From Mytilus edulis (Eukaryota): a stretch of DNA of 64,000 nucleotides. The DNA lies in contig NC_092355.1 in NCBI RefSeq assembly GCF_963676685.1, forward strand, positions 81,158,001-81,222,000, written 5' to 3'. The notes under the pieces are model-generated. The model saw nothing but the letters and a program-made list of their open reading frames with translations, was not told the DNA's origin and did no database searches. Shown in pieces: positions 3,501 through 36,500 of the stretch (positions within the stretch are counted from its first letter, which is position 1; each line of letters begins with the position of its first letter). The position numbers and the translations under genes were made by a program.

Positions 3501-6500
3501 TAGCGGGATCCCAACCCTCCCCTAACCTGGGACAGTGGTATAACAGTACAACATAAGAACGAACAATAAAAATCAGTTGAAAAAGGCTAAACTCATCAGA
3601 TGGACAAAAATACAAGTGGACGTGGCCGGGTACTTATACATCCCGACACAAAAAGACACAATAAACAGATCTGAGAGTACTCGCAGTTATCTGACAGCTA
3701 GTTCAGATGGCAATTTGTTTGTTTGCAGATAGTTTTATGTAGCAGTTTATTAAATCAGCTGACAGGACTATTTGGTATGGTAATGTCTTTAATCAAATCA
3801 CTACACAAATCAGAACAGACGGTTACACCTACAACAGACCCACCAGACTTATCAGAAATAGCCCTCCCAGAACCAACACCCCTAGGTCAGTCACGAGACT
3901 ACACAGGGATGACAGAAACTGAGACATCAGATGTCACATCACGAGAACCAACACCTAACCGTGACCTTGAAAAGTCACCAGACAAAGTCAAACTGTCACT
4001 ATGGTTACAATGGACACTTCCAAAGCTGGAGTTGAGATTATATAGTGAGGCTATCACTAAAGAAAGTAAGTACATGAACTTTTCGGACCTTAAAGGTCAA
4101 TTCTTCCTGTAATGGATCACAAAATGTTAAAAAAAAAAGTTAAAAGAAAAAAAAATATGCTACTGGATTCATTTATTTTCGTGGGTACTAATTCTGTTGA
4201 TTGCAGAAATTTTCCTTTTTTGTGTATATGTAATTTCAAGGTTTTGTCAAAGTCTGCATATGTGATAGAAAATTTGTACTGTTTTGAACATTGAAATTTG
4301 TGGTTCACCTGTACCCACAAAAACCACAAAAATTCATATCCCACGAATAATAATGAATCCACAGTAATTGAAAAAGATGAGTTGAAAGAAAAAAAAAAAG
4401 GACCAAGACCCAAGGAAGAGGCAAACTATCCTGTCCACAAAATACTTCAGTAGAAACTTTTAGACAAAGAGATTAACCATAATCACATGACTAAAGGCAA
4501 ACTATCCTGTCCACAAAATACTTCAGTAGAAACTTTTAGACCAAGAGATTAACCATAATCACATGACTAAAGGCCAACTATCCTGTCCACAAAATACTTC
4601 AGTAGAAACTTTTAGACCAAGAGATTAACCATAATCACATGACTAAAGGCCAACTATCCTGTCCACAAAATACTTCAGTAGAAACTTTTAGACCAAGAGA
4701 TTAACCATAATCACATGACTAAAGGCAAACTATCCTGTCCACAAAATACTTCAGTAGAAACTTTTAGACCAAGAGATTAACCATAATCACATGACTAAAG
4801 GCAAACTATCCTGTCCACAAAATACTTCAGTAGAAACTTTTAGACCAAGAGATTAACCATAATCACATGACTAAAGGCAAACTATCCTGTCCACAAAATA
4901 CTTCAGTAGAAACTTTTAGACCAAGAGATTAACCATAATCACATGACTAAAGGCAAACTATCCTGTCCACAAAATACTTCAGTAGAAACTTTTAGACCAA
5001 GAGATTAACCATAATCACATGACTAAAGGCAAACTATCCTGTCCACAAAATACTTCAGTAGAAACTTTTAGACCAAGAGATTAACCATAATCACATGACT
5101 AAAGGCAAACTATCCTGTCCACAAAATACTTCAGTAGAAACTTTTAGACCAAGAGATTAACCATAATCACATGACTAAAGGCCAACTATCCTGTCCACAA
5201 AATACTTCAGTAGAAACTTTTAGACCAAGAGATTAACCATAATCACATGACTAAAGGCCAACTATCCTGTCCACAAAATACTTCAGTAGAAACTTTTAGA
5301 CCAAGAGATTAACCATAATCACATGACTAAAGGCAAACTATCCTGTCCACAAAATACTTCAGTAGAAACTTTTAGACCAAGAGATTAACCATAATCACAT
5401 GACTAAAGGCAAACTATCCTGTCCACAAAATACTTCAGTAGAAACTTTTAGACCAAGAGATTAACCATAATCACATGACTAAAGGCAAACTATCCTGTCC
5501 ACAAAATACTTCAGTAGAAACTTTTAGACCAAGAGATTAACCATAATCACATGACTAAAGGCAAACTATCCTGTCCACAAAATACTTCAGTAGAAACTTT
5601 TAGACCAAGAGATTAACCATAATCACATGACTAAAGGCAAACTATCCTGTCCACAAAATACTTCAGTAGAAACTTTTAGACCAAGAGATTAACCATAATC
5701 ACATGACTAAAGGCCAACTATCCTGTCCACAAAATACTTCAGTAGAAACTTTTAGACCAAGAGATTAACCATAATCACATGACTAAAGGCAAACTATCCT
5801 GTCCACAAAATACTTCAGTAGAAACTTTTAGACCAAGAGATTAACCATAATCACATGACTAAAGGCAAACTATCCTGTCCACAAAATACTTCAGTAGAAA
5901 CTTTTAGACAAAGAGATTAACCATAATCACATGACTAAAGGCAAACTATCCTGTCCACAAAATACTTCAGTAGAAACTTTTAGACCAAGAGATTAACCAT
6001 AATCACATGACTAAAGGCAAACTATCCTGTCCACAAAATACTTCAGTAGAAACTTTTAGACCAAGAGATTAACCATAATCACATGACTAAAGGCCAACTA
6101 TCCTGTCCACAAAATACTTCAGTAGAAACTTTTAGACCAAGAGATTAACCATAATCACATGACTAAAGGCAAACTATCCTGTCCACAAAATACTTCAGTA
6201 GAAACTTTTAGACCAAGAGATTAACCATAATCACATGACTAAAGGCAAACTATCCTGTCCACAAAATACTTCAGTAGAAACTTTTAGACCAAGAGATTAA
6301 CCATAATCACATGACTAAAGGCAAACTATCCTGTCCACAAAATACTTCAGTAGAAACTTTTAGACAAAGAGATTAACCATAATCACATGACTAAAGGCAA
6401 ACTATCCTGTCCACAAAATACTTCAGTAGAAACTTTTAGACCAAGAGATTAACCATAATCACATGACTAAAGGCAAACTATCCTGTCCACAAAATACTTC

Positions 6501-21500: not shown

Positions 21501-24500
21501 TATTGGTGCCGTGACCCATGGAGAAATTAAAAGCAATTCGTGGTGGTCACCGTAGTGCAGTTACAAGATTAATTAATAGAACAAAGGAAAGAATTTCGCA
21601 AGAAGATATTGGACATGAAGAACTTTCGGCTGCCGCAGACAACCTTACAAAGAAGAGGAACCTGCTTGAATCTTTAGACTCACAGATCTTAGATGGAACC
21701 GAATTAGAAGACATGGAACAAGAAATTCTTGACGCGGACGATTATGCAATGAATATGGAAGTCGCCATTCGCCGATTCAAGGACATAGTTTCTGGAAACA
21801 AAACAACCCCATTTCAGCAAACGGTGAGTGAAACAACTTATGTTCCAATAGCCAATACACTTGATTCATCAAATTTTCCGTCAACAAGTATTGCAAATCA
21901 TAATTCAAACCATTCAGAAAATGTATTTACCGTAGATAATAACTCCGTTTATACGAATGCAAACCCAACAACAGCAACAAACTTCTATCACAAACTACCT
22001 AAGCTTGATTTACCGAGTTTTACGGGAGATATATTAACATGGCAGACATTTTGGGAATCGTTTGAGACAACCATTCATCACAATCCCTCTTTGACAAATA
22101 TACAAAAGTTCAGCTATCTCAAATCTCAGGTTCACAGTGAAGCCGCACAATGCATATCCGGTTTATCTCTATCAAACGCCAACTATGAACACGCAATCAT
22201 ATTGTTAAAGGAGAGGTATGGACAGACACAAACCATTATAAACGCATACATGCAGAATCTACTTGAACTTACGCATCCGTCACTTACGCCGCACAGCATA
22301 AGAGTATTTTACGATAAAATGGAATCGTGCATAAGGGGATTAGAGTCGCTCGGACAATCGCAAGACACATTCGGATCACTTTTAGTACCAATCATATTTG
22401 GAAAGTTGCCCGACGAAATGAAAAAACTCATGACCAGAGAAAACGGAAAACGAAATTGGGATATAAGGTCCCTTAGAGAAGCAATCGGCAAAGAGATGTA
22501 CGTACAGGAAACTGGTAATTCAGATAAATTAGACAGTTTCACACCCACAGCGTCATTTCACACAACAGTTGAACCCAAAATCACTACAAGACCTCAATAT
22601 TCAATAAATCAGTTCAAACCCAAAACCTGTATTTATTGCAAACAATCGCATTCTTCAGTCGAATGTACCAGTGTAGTAGACAGAGAAAGCCGCTTAGCTA
22701 TCATTGAACAGAAAAAAGTATGTTACAGTTGCTTTGGAAGTCATAAAGTTTCAGAATGCCGCTCGCGTTTTAGATGCAGAAAATGTGATAACAAGCACCA
22801 CCCTAGTCTTTGTGACAGTAATAAGAATCAAGAAAAGGAAAGCGTAAGCGTAAGTACAGCAAAATATTTACCGCAAAACACCATAGTAAGTACAGTAGAG
22901 AGCAAAAATGATGCATTAACATGTTACACGTCGACATTGAACATTAAACCAAGGACAGACATTTTATTAAAGACAGCCATTTCACCAGTTTGGGTAGATG
23001 ACAGGTCAGCTACCGCTAATATTCTTTTAGATGAAGGATCTCAGAAGTCGTTTATTAGCGAGGAATTAGCCGCTGAATTGCAATTAAAACCGAATGGAAC
23101 CTCGACAGTTAGCCTAGCAGCATTTGGAGATGAAAACAGAAATATACGATATTTGGACATTGCCGTAATAGATTTACAAACTCAGAATGGGAAGAAAATA
23201 CCAATGGAAGTATTTATTGTCCCTACTATCGCAGCCCCATTACACAATCGCATGCCATACAATGCTGCTAATCTGCCTTACCTCAGTGGACTTACATTAG
23301 CGCACCCTGTGAGCGACATGGATAAATTCAGGATTTCATTTTTAATAGGTTCGGATTACTACTGGGATATCGTAGAAGACACAGTTATCCGAGGACCAGG
23401 CCCGACCGCAGTAGAATCAAAACTCGGATACCTACTTTCTGGACCAATGAAAGACTCAGCTGGACCCACATCCTCATCTTTCATGTTACAACACAAGACA
23501 GAAGAAGTCGATTTGAAACGTTTTGGGAAAATCGAATCAATGGGAGAAGTATCTGACAATTCAATGAAATTTAACAAAGACTACTTTGAGACGTATCATT
23601 CAAAAAGCAACACAATGAAGAACAATGGTAGGATTCACACATTTAGCAGGGAACCAGGAATAATGAAAATCCACGGAGACAGAGCACCGAGTAAAACTGA
23701 AGCCAAGCTAAAGATTCAAACATGGACTTAATACTTTCATGACAATATACTTACTGGTATCAAGTGCGCCGTAATTTTGATAATGATCATAGTGAATAGA
23801 CAGTTTAACAATTTCTATTTATTTACATGGACTTTAAATAGTTAATTATCATTTCACACTTTGTATGTTAATTTCTTTTTCATAATTTTAGATTAATTTT
23901 CACTTTTCGGCGCCCCCAGTGTCAAGTATTAGCCGCTGTACATTTTACTAAGTAACTAACGTCACTAATGTTACCTATTGTTTACGTTGTCTATTGTTTA
24001 CGTAACGTTGCCTTGTGTGCAACGTCTCATAACTTGAATACAATTTGATATGAACACAACGCCTTTCATTACTAACCCTAAAGCGAAGTACTAACCACAA
24101 GAAACACGATACACGATAATACTGTCTACAATAACCTAGTAACACAAAGAACATCTGGAGGTCAATATACTGTCTACAATAACCTAGTAACACAAAGAAC
24201 ATCTGGAGGTCAATACACTGTCTACAATAACCTAGTAACACAAAGAACATCTGGAGGTCAATACACTGTCTACAATAACCTAGTAACACAAAGAACATCT
24301 GGAGGTCAATATACTATCTACAATAACCTAGTAACACAAAGAACATCTGGAGGTCAATTACTATCTACAATAACCTAGTAACACAAAGAACATCTGGAGG
24401 TCAATACACTGTCTACAATAACCTAGTAACACAAAGAACATCTGGAGGTCAATATACTATCTACAATAACCTAGTAACACAAAGAACATCTGGAGGTCAA

Positions 24501-27500: not shown

Positions 27501-30500
27501 ATTACAAAATCACAGCAACAATATCCATGATATTATTTAGAATCAGTAAGGTATATAAGTACAAAAAATGTACCACCACCTCTTTGGCGAAATATACACC
27601 ATTAATTTTTTTCTCACTGTAGTCAATTCAAATCATGCAAATGGCCCACTCATTTGACAACATGGCCCATATTTTTTTTAAATGGCCCATTGAATTTATT
27701 TTTGAGGGGCCCTAGGCCAATAGAGAAAAAATCCTTCCAGATCACTGTGCAATTGCAACTTAATTAAACATTTATGCTTGACATTTTCAGATGAAATCTC
27801 CAGTAAGTGTGATCCAGGGGAGATAATCTTTTGTAACAGGGATAAAGATGGGAATAGTCACATGACCTGGTGTTACCATCAACCTAGAGTTGTCTCCCTT
27901 GTCAAGTTTACACCAATACCATTTAATGTCCCTGTTAAACAGATGACAGAGGAGTATGATGAAGAACAGCTAGTAAGTACTTGTCTAGAGTTGTCTCCCT
28001 TGTCAAGTTTACACCAATACCATTTAATGTCCCTGTTAAACAGATGACAGAGGAGTATGATGAAGAACAGCTGGTAAGTACTTGTCTAGAGTTGTCTCCC
28101 TTGTCAAGTTTACACCAATACCATTTAATGTCCCTGTTAAACAGATGACAGAGGAGTATGATGAAGAACAGCTAGTAAGTACTTGTCTAGAGTTGTCTCC
28201 CTTGTCAAGTTTACACCAATACCATTTAATGTCCCTGTTAAACAGATGACAGAGGAGTATGATGAAGAACAGCTAGTAAGTACTTGTCTAGAGTTGTCTC
28301 CCTTGTCAAGTTTACACCAATACCATTTAATGTCCCTGTTAAACAGATGACAGAGGAGTATGATGAAGAACAGCTAGTAAGTACTTGTCTAGAGTTGTCT
28401 CCCTTGTCAAGTTTACACCAATACCATTTAATGTCCCTGTTAAACAGATGACAGAGGAGTATGATGAAGAACAGCTAGTAAGTACTTGTCTAGAGTTGTC
28501 TCCCTTGTCAAGTTTACACCAATACCATTTAATGTCCCTGTTAAACAGATGACAGAGGAGTATGATGAAGAACAGCTAGTAAGTACTTGTCTAGAGTTGT
28601 CTCCCTTGTCAAGTTTACACCAATACCATTTAATGTCCCTGTTAAACAGATGACAGAGGAGTATGATGAAGAACAGCTAGTAAGTACTTGTCTAGAGTTG
28701 TCTCCCTTGTCAAGTTTACACCAATACCATTTAATGTCCCTGTTAAACAGATGACAGAGGAGTATGATGAAGAACAGCTAGTAAGTACTTGTCTAGAGTT
28801 GTCTCCCTTGTCAAGTTTACACCAATACCATTTAATGTCCCTGTTAAACAGATGACAGAGGAGTATGATGAAGAACAGCTAGTAAGTACTTGTCTAGAGT
28901 TGTCTCCCTTGTCAAGTTTACACCAATACCATTTAATGTCCCTGTTAAACAGATGACAGAGGAGTATGATGAAGAACAGCTGGTAAGTACTTGTCTAGAG
29001 TTGTCTCCCTTGTCAAGTTTACACCAATACCATTTAATGTCCCTGTTAAACAGATGACAGAGGAGTATGATGAAGAACAGCTAGTAAGTACTTGTCTAGA
29101 GTTGTCTCCCTTGTCAAGTTTACACCAATACCATTTAATGTCCCTGTTAAACAGATGACAGAGGAGTATGATGAAGAACAGCTAGTAAGTACTTGTCTAG
29201 AGTTGTCTCCCTTGTCAAGTTTACACCAATACCATTTAATGTCCCTGTTAAACAGATGACAGAGGAGTATGCTGAAGAACAGCTAGTAAGTACTTGTCTA
29301 GAGTTGTCTCCCTTGTCAAGTTTACACCAATACCATTTAATGTCCCTGTTAAACAGATGACAGAGGAGTATGATGAAGAACAGCGAGTAAGTACTTGTCT
29401 AGAGTTGTCTCCCTTGTCAAGTTTACACCAATACGTGGCTTCCGGTTCCGGTTAGAAGTTGTGAAAGAAAAAGCTAAGAGAAATCAGATTTAAATCCGTG
29501 GTTATTGTTGGTAATCAGTGTACATCCATAAAATAAAACATCATTTACGAATCATCCAAACCTTTATATAGCATATACACAAAATTTTGATCATCCCAAC
29601 ACCAAAATGTAGATTATATCATCTTTCGTCAGAATTTGGTGGTCAAACCACGTTGCCGAAAAATTGGACATTCATATTTTTAATTGACATTTATATTCTG
29701 TATTTTGCGCTTTTCTGCTCCGATATTTAAATTATATAATTATAGGGAAGCCCTATCATTATATTTTGTATTTATATACTTCGTTTTTTGCGTTCGCCTA
29801 GAATAATACTGTTTGTGTACAAAAAATAGGGAAGCCCTATTTTTCATTTACACCGCTTGTGCTATAGTCTATTAAAGTAATATACAGTCGTAGTAACAAT
29901 CATTATATATATGTCTGTGAGGAAGATAATTAAAGAGAGGAAAAAGATATACCAAAGGGTTAGGGGAGCACACCTGGAAAGAGACACTATCTTGTTCACG
30001 GACAGCAAAGGGGTGGGCCTAAAAGAATATATCCCAGAATCAACTGGGCAAAAATTTAAAGTGTTGTATAAGAGAGGAGGATCGATCGACAACAAAAAAC
30101 ACATAAAATCACTCATAGACACGGTGAAAGATTTGGATCACCCAATAATACTGATCTGGCTAGGTACATGTGAAATTACACAGAAGATAAACAAAACCAT
30201 CCAGTTTAGAAAATCACCGTATCAAAATATAGAAGAAACTTTAACACAATATAGGGATCTCAAACAACAAATCATAACAACAAAACCATCTGCCACAGTG
30301 CTTTTTATAGAGTGTCCATACTATTCGATCACAAGGGCCAATAAACCTAAAGATTCAATTAACTTAATTGTGAATAGTAAAAAAAAGACATATCCGTCAC
30401 TCCTGGTAAATAAAGCCACCAAAGGTTACAGAAAAGTCCAATTGGCAACAAACATAGACAAAGAACTAAGCGAACAGATTGACTACTTCAACGATCACCT

Positions 30501-33500
30501 AAAATTGATTAATCGCCTTTATTCTACACCAAGAATTTCTCAAGATTTTATCCTTTCAAACAAGACAAAAAGAGACACTAAAGTTAAATATAGAAAGAAT
30601 TTCAACCTAACATCGGACGGAGTACATCCCATAAGAGCTGTAAATAAATTGTGGATGCTGAAATTCATAGATTTGGCACTTGAACTGTCAGAGCAAGGAT
30701 GTTAATTAAATAGCCAGCAAAATAGACAATAAAAACAAGAAAAATAGTTAAATAAGGAAGCCTTGTTTAACATACTAGATCCGAATTATCCTGCGTAATA
30801 TAATTAAGGAAGCCTTAATTATAAAGCAAAGAGGAAAATCAACAACATAGGGAAGCCCTATTAGATCATAAATTAAAAAGTTATTTAAAAAATTGAATAA
30901 AATATTAGAAAAGTAGGGAAGCCCTGTTTTTTCTAGGAATTAACAACATAAAAGACCATACAGAGATAGCTAGCATAACTAAGTATAGAACAAATAACAG
31001 GGGGCCTAAAATAGATAGAGAAGCTCTATCTAGCATTAACATACTTCATAATTATTTAGTTCGAATAGGGAAGCCCTATTCGTCCGGATAAATAGAAAGG
31101 AGATACAACTTAACGATCAATTCTATTAGGGAAGCCCTAATATAGGACATAGGAAAGAGCAGAATAAAGGGACAACAAGCTTAGAAAAAATAATTATAGA
31201 TAGAGAAGCTCTATCTAATATCAGGAAGATAAATAATATTATCTAGAGAAATTTTATTTTTAGGGAAGCCCTAAATTTTAAAATAGTGGAAAAAGTGACC
31301 ACTGCGTCCTATCCTTTGATTTTAACTGTTATGTAAATATAAAAAGAGCACCGAAAATAGCAAATCTGTACAATCATGGAAATTACAAAGAATTTATTCA
31401 AGAGCTGAATAAAATAGACTGGCATAATAAGCTTAATGCTGAAAATTCCATTGATAAAAATTGGAATTATTTTTTAACCATTTTAAAAGAATTAGAGAGC
31501 AGATTTGTACCAACAAAAACTATGACACAAATAGGAAAAAAGAGAAATGTATTCCCCATAGATAAAAAGACGAGAGAGTTAATTAGAAGGAAAAATATTC
31601 TATCCAAAAAAATTATAACTAAACAAGATCCTGAAACAAGAGCTGAATACAATCAAGTCAGAAACCAGGCCAAAACATCAGTCAATAAACAAAAGAAATT
31701 ATTCGAAAAAGGATTATCTGAAAATGCCAAAAGAAACCCAAAGGCTATATGGAGCTACATAAAATCTAAATCAAAGACCAGGGAAGGTATAGGGGACCTA
31801 CATGTAGATACAGAAGATGTAAAATCCGAAAAAACAGATGACAATAAACAAAAGGCCGAGATACTATCAGAATATTTTACAAGCGTATTCACTAATGAAC
31901 CACAAGGCAATATTCCAGAGCCTAAGCATATTCCATTAGATAAAAAAATAGAGGAATTAAATATTGGCACTGATTTGGTTTTGAAACACCTACAAAAAAT
32001 AAAAACGGATAAATCACCCGGCCCTGATAATTTACACCCAAGACTGCTGTTTGAAGTCAAAGAAGGTATAGCTGAACCACTTGGCATCATTTTTAGCCAA
32101 TCTTTAACACAAAAAGTAGTTCCAAAGGATTGGAAAAGCGCCCTAGTGAGTGCAATATTCAAAAAAGGGAATAAATCACAAGCTAAAAATTATAGACCAG
32201 TAAGTCTCACATCAGTCGTCTGTAAAATAATGGAGAAAATAATAAGAGAACATATAATTAATTACATGAAAGAAAATAAACTATTTTCAAACAAACAATA
32301 CGGATTTATCTCTGGGAGATCGACATCACTACAACTATTAGAGGTAATAGATAAATGGACAGAAGCTATAGACAATGGTTATGAGATTGACTGCATATAT
32401 ACAGACTTCATGAAAGCCTTTGATACGGTACCCCATAGACGACTCGTTAAGAAAATCGAAAATTTTGGGATAACTAATCCATTCCTAGAGTGGATAACAG
32501 ATTTTCTATCGTATAGAAAACAACGAGTTTCAGTTAATGGGGAAACATCAGAGTGGAAAGATGTAACCTCAGGAATTCCACAAGGCTCAGTATTAGGTCC
32601 CCTGTTATTTGTTCTATATATAAATGATTTGCCAGATTGCGTGACATCAGATGCCTACTTATTCGCGGATGACACAAAAATCTTCAGAATTATTGAAAGC
32701 AAAACAGATCAAACTATATTGCAAGATGATCTAAAAAATCTCGAGAAATGGAGTGATACATGGCTGTTAAAGTTCCATCCAGAAAAATGCAAACACATAA
32801 ATATAAGTAGAGGGGTAAGGGAAGAAAAGACAAGTTACAAACTATTAGGTCAGGATATAAGTAAATGTCAAGAAGAGAAAGATATTGGAGTAGTAATTGA
32901 TGAAGATCTAACCTTTGAAAGACACATATGCGAAAAAGTGAATAAAGCTAATTCAACTTTTGCCGCAATTAGAAGGACATTTAAAAACTTAAACGAAAAA
33001 ATCTTCATACCTCTATACAAAACATTAGTGCGAACACACTTAGACTATGCTAGCTCTGTATGGTCACCTTTTAAAAAGAAATCCATCGACAAAATCGAAA
33101 ATGTACAAAAAAGGGCAACACGACAGATACCAGGTTTCAATAAAATGAGCTACCCGGAAAGACTGAAAAAACTCAAGCTGCCAACATTGTCATATAGAAG
33201 GGTCCGAGGGGACATGATTGAGACATATAAGATACTAAATGGTAATTACGATCCAGAAACAAGTTCATTCCTTAAATTAATTTCAAGCACTGAAAATAGA
33301 CATAGCACAAGAGTAAACAGTAATAAAATCATTCACCAACGATTCAAAACAAGTCTGAGGAAAAACAGTTTTTCTGTAAGAATAGCCAAATTATGGAACA
33401 AGTTACCAGATAAAGTAACTAAAGCGCCATCTATAAACTCATTCAAAAATAGGCTAGATAGATACTGGGAGTACGAAGAAATCTATTATTCTGATTATCG

Positions 33501-36500
33501 AGCTGAATTAACCGGAAGCAGCATCAGAAATAATGGAGACAATATTCAATTATATGAGTCTGGTGAAGAGGAACCGTGAAGGATCCTGTACTGGAAAACA
33601 TCATTAAGTATCATTAAGTATTAAGTAATACCATTTAATGTCCCTGTTAAACAGATGACAGAGGAGTAAGTACTAGCCTAGAGTTACTTCCCTTGTCAAG
33701 TTTACATAAAAACAACTTTATGTATCTGACTCATAAGATACACAAACTCCATTGAAAGTTCCAAATAAAGATAAAGGGGACCAATGTAAAGGCTGATATA
33801 TATAAATGGAGGGAGGTGTATTGACAAAGTCTCACAATTTTATTTTCAGCTTATAACATCTTTTTAATGTTATTTTTAGATACCATGTTGTCTGCAGTAT
33901 TATGATCCAGCCACGCACAACTTTGTAAACTACATTGATTTTGAGTTATCTGAAAATGAGGAGACATCATTACTTTTCCCAGAAATCAAGGCTGATAATG
34001 CAAGGGACATAACTGTGTCATACCTCTGGAGGGTGGTGGTATATCAAGGATTTATAGAGAACCCTCAACAGTAAGTTTATTGTGGTCCAAGGGACATAAC
34101 TGTGTCATACCTCTCACAGTCTTGGTTTATTTCTAGACATTAGAATGAATAATGAAGTAGCTACTCTAGCCATCTTACCAATATCTTTTGCTGTACACAG
34201 CCATGAGAGGAGCTTTTTGTAACAACTCCAGGTTAATTCCTGTCACATGATCTTCCTGTTCGATTGTTGTTTTTTTTATTCCAGACATAAGAATGATGAA
34301 GCTACTTTAGTCATCTTACCGATATCTTTAGCTGCAGCCACGAGAGTAGACTCTTGTTATATCTCTGTCTTACTTCCTTGTTTGTTTTTTTATTCCAGAC
34401 ATAAGAATGATGAAGCTACTTTAGTCATCTTACCGATATCTTTAGCTGCAGCCACGAGAGTAGACTCTTGTTATATCTCTGTCTTACTTCCTTGTTTGTT
34501 TTTTTATTCCAGACATAAGAATGATGAAGCTACTTTAGTCATCTTACCGATATCTTTAGCTGCAGCCACGAGAGTAGACTCTTGTTATATCTCTGTCTTA
34601 CTTCCTTGTTTGTTTTTTTATTCCAGACATAAGAATGATGAAGCTACTTTAGTCATCTTACCGATATCTTTAGCTGCGGCCACGAGAGTAGACTCTTGTT
34701 ATATCTCTATCTTACTTCCTTGTTTGTTTTTTTATTCCAGACATAAGAATGATGAAGCTACTTTAGTCATCTTACCGATATCTTTAGCTGCGGCCACGAG
34801 AGTAGACTCTTGTTATATCTCTATCTTACTTCCTTGTTTGTTTTTTTATTCCAGACATAAGAATGATGAAGCTACTTTAGCCATCTTACCGATATCTTAA
34901 GCTGCGGCCACGAGAGTAGACTCTTGTTATATCTCTGTCTTACTTCCTTGTTTGTTTTTTTATTCCAGACATAAGAATGATGAAGCTACTTTAGCCATCT
35001 TACCGATATCTTTAGCTGCAGCCATGAGAGTAGACTCTTGTTATATCTCCACGTTAGTTCCAGTCACACAGGTCTGTTTGTCCTGTCCTGTTATAGAAGT
35101 CAGACTACAGAATCATCCTCAACACTTGGGACAAGGTATTTATATATTCTAAGTTAAGGTTGTGAACTTGTTATACCTTTATAGTCCAGAATAAATAATT
35201 AGTTATTGATAAAACTTGGTTTTGAAAATAAGATTGAAGAGGAATACGAACAGATTGTTTTGTAAAGAAATAATTGTTTTCATCATCTTGTCTGTATTGA
35301 TAGATATATTGTATTTATCCAGTTTGCTGTAAACTTTGAAGTACATTGGTGTCATCATTGCTTACAGTTTAATTGGTTGATTTTTTGTGGTTGACTTTTG
35401 TAATGATAGATGTATCAAGGGGGAGATAATCTGCTAAAAAAAGCATTTCTGTGTTTATACATTGTACTATAAATATTTGTAGGTCCCTTCAGTGCAATGT
35501 AGAGCTGCTGCAAGACATTATAAGTCAAGCATCTGTAAATGTCTGTAGTTGTGTGGATTCATTATTATTCATCTGGTACCAATTTTTTTGGATTTCGTGG
35601 TTACATGAACCATGAATTCAAATGTTCAACGAATTATAAAGTTTCTATAGGTTTGGCAGCCAGAGATACGAAATCAAATATCCACGAAACTGCAAGTTTT
35701 CCTCAATCCTTGAAAATTGATACCCACGAACATAAATAAATCCACAGTATCGTATTTATTTTTATTTTTAGCTCACCTGGCCCGAAGGGCCAAGTGAGCT
35801 TTTCTCATCACTTGGCGTCCGGCGTCCGGCGTCCGTCGTCCGTCGTCCGTCGTCCGTCGTCGTCGTCGTCGTTAACTTTTACAAAAATCTTCTCCTCTGA
35901 AACTACTAGGCCAAATTGAACCAAACTTGGCCACAATCATCATTGGGGTATCTAGTTTAAAAAATGTGTGGCGTGACCCGGTCAACCAACCAAGATGGCC
36001 GCCACGGCTAAAAATAGAACATAGGGGTAAAATGCAGTTTTTGGCTTATAACTCAAAAACCAAAGCATTTAGAGGAAATCTGACATGGAGTAAAAATGTG
36101 TATCAGGTCAAGATCTATCTGCCCTGAAATTTTTAGATGAATCGGTCAACCCGTTGTTGGGTTGCTGCCCCTGAATTGGTAATTTTGAGGAAATTTTGCT
36201 GTTTTTGGTTATTATCTTGAATATTATTATAGATAGAGATAAACTGTAAACAGCAATAATCTTCGGCAAAGTTAGATTTACAAATAAGTCAACATGACCG
36301 AAATGGTCAGTTGACCCCTTTAGGAGTTATTGCCCTTTATAGTCAATTTTTAACCATTTTTCATAAATCTAAGTAATCTTTTACAAAAATCTTCTCCTCT
36401 GAAACTACTGGGCCAAATTAATCCAAACTTGGCCACAATCATCTTTGGGGTATCTAGTTTAAAAAATGTGTGGCGTGACCCGGTCAACCAACCAAGATGG

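Follow-up and report, generated by a model that had tools for sequence, protein, structure and literature searches.

Among the nearest described counterparts of the element reported here are long interspersed nuclear elements (LINEs) of the CR1/L2 group, whose esterase and PHD types of first open reading frame (ORF1) were reportedly described by Kapitonov and Jurka in 2003 and by Khazina and Weichenrieder in 2009. It has long been asked how LINE proteins choose their own RNA, the problem of cis preference. For most LINEs we know of no specific RNA signal beyond the 3′ hairpins of stringent L2-type elements, such as eel UnaL2 and zebrafish ZfL2, in which a single cis-acting hairpin at the 3′ end of the RNA, beside the repeat tail, is read by the reverse transcriptase (RT). 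The ORF1 proteins of CR1/L2-group LINEs have been divided into types that include an esterase form (type IV) and a form with PHD and Transposase_22 (type IIC) (PMC4120745; PMC3905857), and the esterase form was found in vertebrate CR1/L2 subgroups only (Metcalfe and Casane, 2014; PMC4120745). The subject of this study is a LINE copy in the mussel Mytilus edulis, analyzed within a window of 64,000 nucleotides (NCBI RefSeq assembly GCF_963676685.1, contig NC_092355.1, positions 81,158,001 to 81,222,000 of the forward strand), to which the coordinates below refer. The RNA of this element carries an array of small hairpins that are conserved, strand-specific, covarying, and located on a transcribed sense RNA, and the family thereby offers a compact, testable signal for the study of cis preference.

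The copy in the window is internally deleted, and its features, all on the plus strand, are as follows. Every hairpin was identified by hairpin scan, and the two in the 5′ untranslated region (UTR), together with the first hairpin of the array, also by folding.

29438..33626, plus strand: LINE copy, internally deleted, three-ORF type (boundaries set by aligning it to five or six other copies and by sequence reading)
29742..29756, plus strand: 5′ UTR hairpin 1, AUAGGG AAG CCCUAU, each arm possibly extended, imperfectly, to 25 nt
29822..29844, plus strand: 5′ UTR hairpin 2, 10 bp, AAG loop
29911..30705, plus strand: ORF-A, 264 aa, SGNH/GDSL-fold esterase (family alignment, AlphaFold2, Foldseek)
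30747..30771, plus strand: array hairpin 1, 11 bp, one U:G wobble, compensatory change in the L032 orthologue
30799..30823, plus strand: array hairpin 2, 11 bp
30847..30861, plus strand: array hairpin 3, 6 bp
30908..30932, plus strand: array hairpin 4, 11 bp, three G:U wobbles
31012..31032, plus strand: array hairpin 5, 9 bp, GAG/CUC variant
31062..31082, plus strand: array hairpin 6, 9 bp
31124..31142, plus strand: array hairpin 7, 8 bp
31197..31217, plus strand: array hairpin 8, 9 bp, same sequence as hairpin 5
31259..31275, plus strand: array hairpin 9, 7 bp, the last remaining in the window copy
31282..33579, plus strand: ORF2 remnant, with APE C-terminal residues (..SGKSDHCVLSFDF), linker, and RT (RVT_1) (ORF and domain search)
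31285..31286, plus strand: deletion junction (alignment with other copies)
33580..33626, plus strand: short 3′ UTR (about 47 nt) with a CATTAAGTAT-like short tandem repeat at its end (sequence reading and copy alignment)

All 11 window hairpins share an AAG triloop and a G-C closing pair on the plus strand, with stems of 6–11 bp counting wobbles; a scan of the whole window found no G-AAG-C hairpin on the minus strand and none within the element downstream of 31275, the 3′ UTR included. An initial annotation of the window, which was a reading of the letters alone, had placed 11 AAG-loop, G-C-closed hairpins here, and both sequence reading and the scan return them at the same places. It had also noted G:U as the only non-Watson-Crick pairs on the plus strand, and the scan agrees, the mispairs in the window hairpins being exclusively G:U on that strand. 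Its description of the layout as repeat and spacer rather than tandem duplication is likewise correct, since Tandem Repeats Finder detects no tandem repeat in the array. The shuffled controls that it had proposed place hairpin density far above expectation: between 30706 and 31285 there are nine stems of at least 7 bp with 3-nt loops, against 0.5 in 1000 dinucleotide shuffles. The motif GGAAGCC occurs 11 times in the window (1.8 expected; none of 100 shuffles as high), and AGRGAAGCYCT nine times (0.09 expected).

The array is retained well beyond this single copy. The same genome (1.37 Gb assembly) has the array region in six more copies, at 89–94% identity, and three further subfamilies, two from the same genome and one from a metagenome contig, keep the array, their ORF-A sequences being 50–61% identical. 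Subfamilies B (L025, L026, and L029; ORF-A 58% identical) and C (L027, L028, and L030; ORF-A about 50% identical) have the esterase ORF, the hairpin array, a PHD ORF, and ORF2 in the same order, and the best preserved of their arrays have 8 to 13 hairpins. The metagenome contig (L032, Ga0256844_10020659; ORF-A 61% identical) has at least eight hairpins directly past ORF-A. No array was seen in L033, a more distant relative (ORF-A 35% identical) and the single distant relative compared. Between subfamilies the spacers are unalignable, while the hairpins line up.

Covariation was assessed on a set of 39 distinct hairpins from the four subfamilies, aligned in register and chosen for at least five pairs, so that only pairs 6–11 are unbiased. 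The AAG loop, the closing G-C, and an A-U at pair 4 are invariant in 39 of 39; pairs 2 and 3 alternate between G-C and A-U, and pair 5 is U-A, U-G, or C-G. Each hairpin is thus built of a constant head of about 13 nt, with invariant and covarying positions (AAG triloop, G-C closing pair, two purine-pyrimidine pairs, A-U, and Y-R), set on a distal stem that is free in sequence and retains its pairing. The distal pairs use all four Watson-Crick types, as exemplified by pair 7 (16 A-U, 10 G-C, 6 U-A, 1 C-G, 2 G:U wobbles, and 4 unpaired). Across the set, 83.9% of cells are paired versus 68% in shuffles, and the covariation score is 0.481 versus 0.207, with none of 500 shuffles as high and slid registers reaching at most 0.21. 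A compensatory change is also seen between orthologous copies of array hairpin 1, whose arms are GUUAAAUAAGG/CCUUGUUUAAC in the window and GUUAGAUAAGG/CCUUAUCUAAC in L032.

The kinds of mispairs tolerated indicate the structured strand. Within pairs 1–9 there are 21 G:U versus 3 A:C mispairs (p = 3e-4), the unselected pairs 6–9 contribute 10 versus 3, and a wider hairpin list gives 63 G:U versus 6 A:C; this bias points to the sense RNA. Stranded raw RNA sequencing reads from a Mytilus species (run X21) include 50 reads of the element, nearly all in sense orientation, from about 6% of the run, a depth too low for RNA ends or cuts. These reads traverse ORF-A, the array, and ORF-B without joints, and a 5.6 kb contig from another run (RNA by guess only) spans ORF2 to ORF-A unbroken. 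A spliced intron was considered as an explanation for the array and rejected, no joints being found in RNA reads or contigs. The contigs of two independent runs, X1 and X3, and the X21 raw reads stop or thin between the two 5′ UTR hairpins (L020, 6871-7001), a break that could be a transcription start or an assembly break. When the intact array is folded as sense RNA, the minimum-energy fold includes 11 of 11 hairpins (z = −7.2); the antisense strand folds well too, as expected for palindromes, and individual hairpins are weak, at −5 to −11 kcal/mol. The selected structure that the initial annotation proposed for the sense transcript is therefore supported by covariation, by conservation across subfamilies, by the G:U bias, and by the sense reads.

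Comparison with other copies, whose identity to the window copy over the whole element is 88–99%, shows what the intact element looks like. It is about 6.06 kb long, the best copy being L020 on the reverse strand, and consists of a 5′ UTR with two hairpins, ORF-A (264 aa), 11 hairpins, ORF-B (325 aa), ORF2 (about 1040 aa), and a 3′ repeat, for 13 hairpins per element (two before and 11 after the esterase ORF). The window copy starts at its 5′ end with GCTTCCGGTTCCGG and terminates at its 3′ end in a CATTAAGTAT-type short repeat; in all copies the 3′ terminus is CATCATTAAGTATCATTAAG(TA)AGTA, a short tandem repeat and not poly(A). By alignment, the window copy lacks about 1.86 kb present in six other copies, a segment that holds two hairpins, the complete ORF-B, and most of the ORF2 APE domain. 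The frame past the junction opens with the final APE residues, SGKSDHCVL. The initial annotation had put the array directly upstream of the RT, which is true of the window copy only and arises because the deletion removed ORF-B and most of APE; intact copies have the array between ORF-A and ORF-B. Nor is the array the ORF1-ORF2 spacer that it was taken for; the gap that it fills has an extra esterase ORF on one side and a PHD/L1-ORF1p-like ORF on the other. What had been read as ORF1, the frame lying between the two groups of hairpins, is by fold match this extra esterase and not the element's RNA-binding ORF1. Internal initiation of ORF2, a function that had been offered for the array, names the wrong target, because in intact copies the array precedes ORF-B, and any translational role would concern that ORF.

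Some further observations concern the copies and their surroundings. In intact copies ORF2 overlaps the end of ORF-B (L020 reverse strand, 5606-5696); it is read in a different frame, open from about 90 nt upstream of the stop of ORF-B, so frameshifting or reinitiation may be needed for ORF2 expression. The window copy is enclosed by a tandem repeat of the host, about 100 bp in size (unit ...AACAGATGACAGAGGAGTA...CCCTTGTCAAGTTTACA...) at 29250-29437 and 33627-33710, and its two flanks are alike over about 80 nt because the LINE inserted within this repeat. A giant target duplication, considered in view of the long flank similarity, is accordingly ruled out, and the target duplication is probably the 5-bp AATAC at 29430-29434 and 33627-33631. 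Two old copies, L018 and L019 (G000:C11:24818000-24827999 and 31346000-31355999), at about 80% identity, have arrays interrupted by about 4 kb of other repeats. As these repeats recur at 35765-36430 of the window, the interruptions are nested insertions from a separate repeat family.

ORF-A has no Pfam match, and a sequence-profile search against the PDB also gave none, so that a fold search was required. Its AlphaFold2 model has a predicted local distance difference test (pLDDT) score of 83.4, and the top Foldseek matches are GDSL/SGNH esterases, including PAF acetylhydrolase (E 1e-6). The motifs DSKG (Ser32) and DGxHP (Asp236 and His239) are conserved in the family alignment, and a basic N-terminal helix at residues 3-17 is conserved in alignment and model. 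The protein shares 97% identity with one from Mytilus edulis, and the ORF-B product of intact copies shares 99% with one from M. galloprovincialis. [quoted passage not shown] As modeled, ORF-B is an L1-ORF1p-like protein composed of PHD, coiled coil, RRM, and CTD. It corresponds to the type IIC ORF1 of Metcalfe and Casane (PMC4120745). ORF2 of the intact L020 matches Exo_endo_phos_2 (8.5e-16) and RVT_1 (3.8e-35). The element accordingly has the hallmarks of an APE-type retrotransposon without long terminal repeats (non-LTR), namely APE and RT in ORF2, ORF1 modules of CR1/L2 type, and a 3′ end of short tandem repeats. From architecture and 3′ tail, membership in the CR1/L2 group (Jockey superfamily), be it in CR1, CR1-Zenon, L2, or another clade, is plausible.

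The distribution of the head and of the encoded proteins bears on the origin of the array. The exact head, TAGGGAAGCCCTA, has 63 matches in the 1.37 Gb genome, nearly all clustered within copies of this LINE lineage. The reversed control pattern, ATCCCGAAGGGAT, is as frequent as the head, with 62 genome matches; it is therefore the clustering, and not the genome-wide count, that is informative. ATCCCGAAGGGAT is itself a small palindrome with a GAA center that lies several-fold above a rough base-composition estimate, and it may belong to another repeat family. Relatives of ORF-B at 32–36% identity have no ORF-A nearby, and the genome has many relatives of ORF-A, about 30% identical, at other places, which suggests that the module of esterase and hairpins was added to a single LINE lineage of the PHD/ORF1p type.

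Two other ORFs of the window lie outside the element. A 737-aa ORF at 21518-23731 (plus strand) has a match to DUF1759 (E 1e-36) and one to DUF1758, a putative peptidase; the two typically occur together in the gag-protease portion of LTR retrotransposons of the Bel/Pao type. A 217-aa ORF at 34247-34900 (plus strand) has weak, cysteine-rich, low-complexity Pfam matches only and is probably no real gene.

What the hairpins do is a matter of inference, as it was when the initial annotation called them a multivalent recognition element. The reading that we tentatively prefer, and to which we give slightly less than an even chance, is that they are putative multivalent protein-binding sites that nucleate the ribonucleoprotein (RNP) of the element. 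The 13 identical heads on each RNA would serve as repeated docking sites for one RNA-binding protein specific for both sequence and shape, and the most likely binder would be a multimer encoded by the element. One candidate is ORF-B, the predicted L1-ORF1p-like protein with PHD, coiled coil, RRM, and CTD, encoded immediately downstream; another is the esterase ORF-A, which could bind via its basic N-terminal helix. Binding at high avidity would then nucleate RNP assembly on the element's own RNA, much as dispersed stem-loop packaging signals recruit coat proteins in single-stranded RNA (ssRNA) viruses. Docking is favored over a barrier function because single hairpins are weak and it is the head, not overall stability, that is conserved. 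Several points weigh against this proposal. The covariation set has its selection bias in the inner pairs, and its paralogues are not independent; the depth of run X21 is low; and L1-type ORF1p binds RNA with little sequence specificity. Esterase-type ORF1 proteins, moreover, are without a defined RNA-binding domain (Schneider et al., 2013; PMC3905857). In all four subfamilies the array begins 12–42 nt past the ORF-A stop and ends 17–45 nt before the ORF-B AUG, and an array that fills the whole intercistronic gap fits a translational role equally well.

That role would be to let ribosomes reach ORF-B on a tricistronic RNA, through a modular platform like an internal ribosome entry site, recruitment of initiation factors, reinitiation, or shunting. 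Besides the span of the array across the entire ORF-A/ORF-B gap in four subfamilies, it can be said for translation control that a eukaryotic RNA with three ORFs requires some unconventional initiation, and that ATG is scarce in the gap of subfamily C (2 versus 7.8 expected, p = 0.002) and absent from that of the window copy. The depletion is not general, however (L032, 13 versus 13.2; L025, 5 versus 5.7; L020, 2 versus 2.8), and AUG depletion was dropped as a sign of scanning or reinitiation, being inconsistent across subfamilies. Two hairpins lie in the 5′ UTR upstream of ORF-A, where an intercistronic device does not need them; hairpins of −5 to −11 kcal/mol are too weak to stall ribosomes or force a shunt; and the gap as a whole is closed by a weak 5-bp pairing only, leaving take-off and landing sites loosely held. 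Translation control is therefore thought unlikely. A host factor is given a similarly small share of the probability: the hairpins could bind a cellular protein for nuclear export of the unspliced RNA, germ-cell localization, or stabilization, or act as a silencing decoy. The structural evidence applies to this idea equally, sequence-specific RNA binding is proven for neither element protein, and retroelement RNAs do carry export and localization stem-loops, as in the L1 NXF1 element and the localization signal of the I factor. Yet TAGGGAAGCCCTA is almost confined to this LINE lineage, with no host RNA carrying the same signal evident, and 13 copies exceed the number in known export or localization signals.

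Two remaining explanations both appear very improbable. The palindromes could act in DNA, as sites for dimeric transcription factors or as an internal promoter comparable to the 5′ UTR monomers of mouse L1. Repeated promoter units are frequent in LINE 5′ regions and the core is a palindrome with a 3-nt center; the contigs from X1 and X3 (RNA by guess only) also break near the 5′ UTR hairpins, a break of uncertain meaning. A half-site reader, however, would not require pairing, whereas the distal stems differ in sequence yet pair for up to 11–14 bp; G:U is tolerated and A:C is not, an asymmetry that would mean nothing in duplex DNA; the loop, which is not palindromic, reads AAG on the sense strand in every case; and there is no tandem monomer structure. 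The palindromes could instead be a functionless by-product of snap-back or template-switching synthesis or of local duplication. Reverse transcriptases can yield snap-back products, and the identity of hairpins 5 and 8 suggests duplication or conversion within the array. Such a neutral origin is hard to reconcile with the persistence of arrays across subfamilies with 50–61% identical ORF-A and unalignable spacers, and the invariant head, the strand-specific wobble bias, and the orthologous compensatory change indicate purifying selection.

A more far-reaching candidate reading is that virus-like, sequence-specific packaging has evolved in a non-LTR retrotransposon whose hairpin array is read by its own ORF1p-like or esterase multimer. 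This we consider possible but doubtful. If true, it would amount to genuine cis recognition of a LINE RNA by its own products and would tie the added esterase gene to the RNP, and LINEs would thereby gain their first defined code of high-valency RNA-protein recognition. The 13-copy signal has candidate binders encoded on both of its sides, and if binding were confirmed, the hairpin-protein pair could be used as an orthogonal RNA-tagging module.

Such a hairpin array is not described in the literature searched (LINE ORF1 types, bivalve LINEs, packaging hairpins, and AAG triloops), and the Rfam 15 covariance models gave no match at E <= 1 on either strand of 29400-31400, in keeping with the initial annotation, which knew of none described for CR1/L2 elements. 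A close parallel in form is found in ssRNA viruses, which include MS2 and satellite tobacco necrosis virus, with assembly mediated by packaging signals; the alphaviruses, with a signal of 4-6 stem-loops bearing a GGG loop motif; and alfalfa mosaic virus, with hairpin/AUGC coat-protein sites in the 3′ UTR. Shared with the mussel array are many hairpins per RNA, a short invariant motif of loop and upper stem, variable stems, and free spacers. The mussel array differs in belonging to a non-LTR retrotransposon without a capsid, in its 13 copies and more uniform head, and in its restriction to two short regions flanking one ORF. Like the UnaL2 and ZfL2 signals it is a cis-acting hairpin feature of a LINE RNA, but it lies in the 5′ third of the RNA. 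The tandem monomer promoters of mouse L1 are likewise repeated units in the 5′ part of a LINE; in the mussel array, by contrast, only hairpins of about 13–25 nt recur and the signal is specific to the RNA strand. With the CR1/L2 LINEs that have a type IV or type IIC ORF1, the mussel element shares its modules (esterase, PHD, coiled coil, RRM, CTD, and APE-RT) and a short 3′ repeat, whereas its esterase and PHD/ORF1p-like proteins are separate ORFs with the hairpin array between them. The protein modules themselves are thus known; what is new is the three-ORF arrangement, which brings an esterase and an L1-ORF1p-like type of ORF1 together in a single element, the hairpin array, and the presence of the esterase module in a mollusc, beyond the vertebrate groups in which it had been recorded (PMC4120745).

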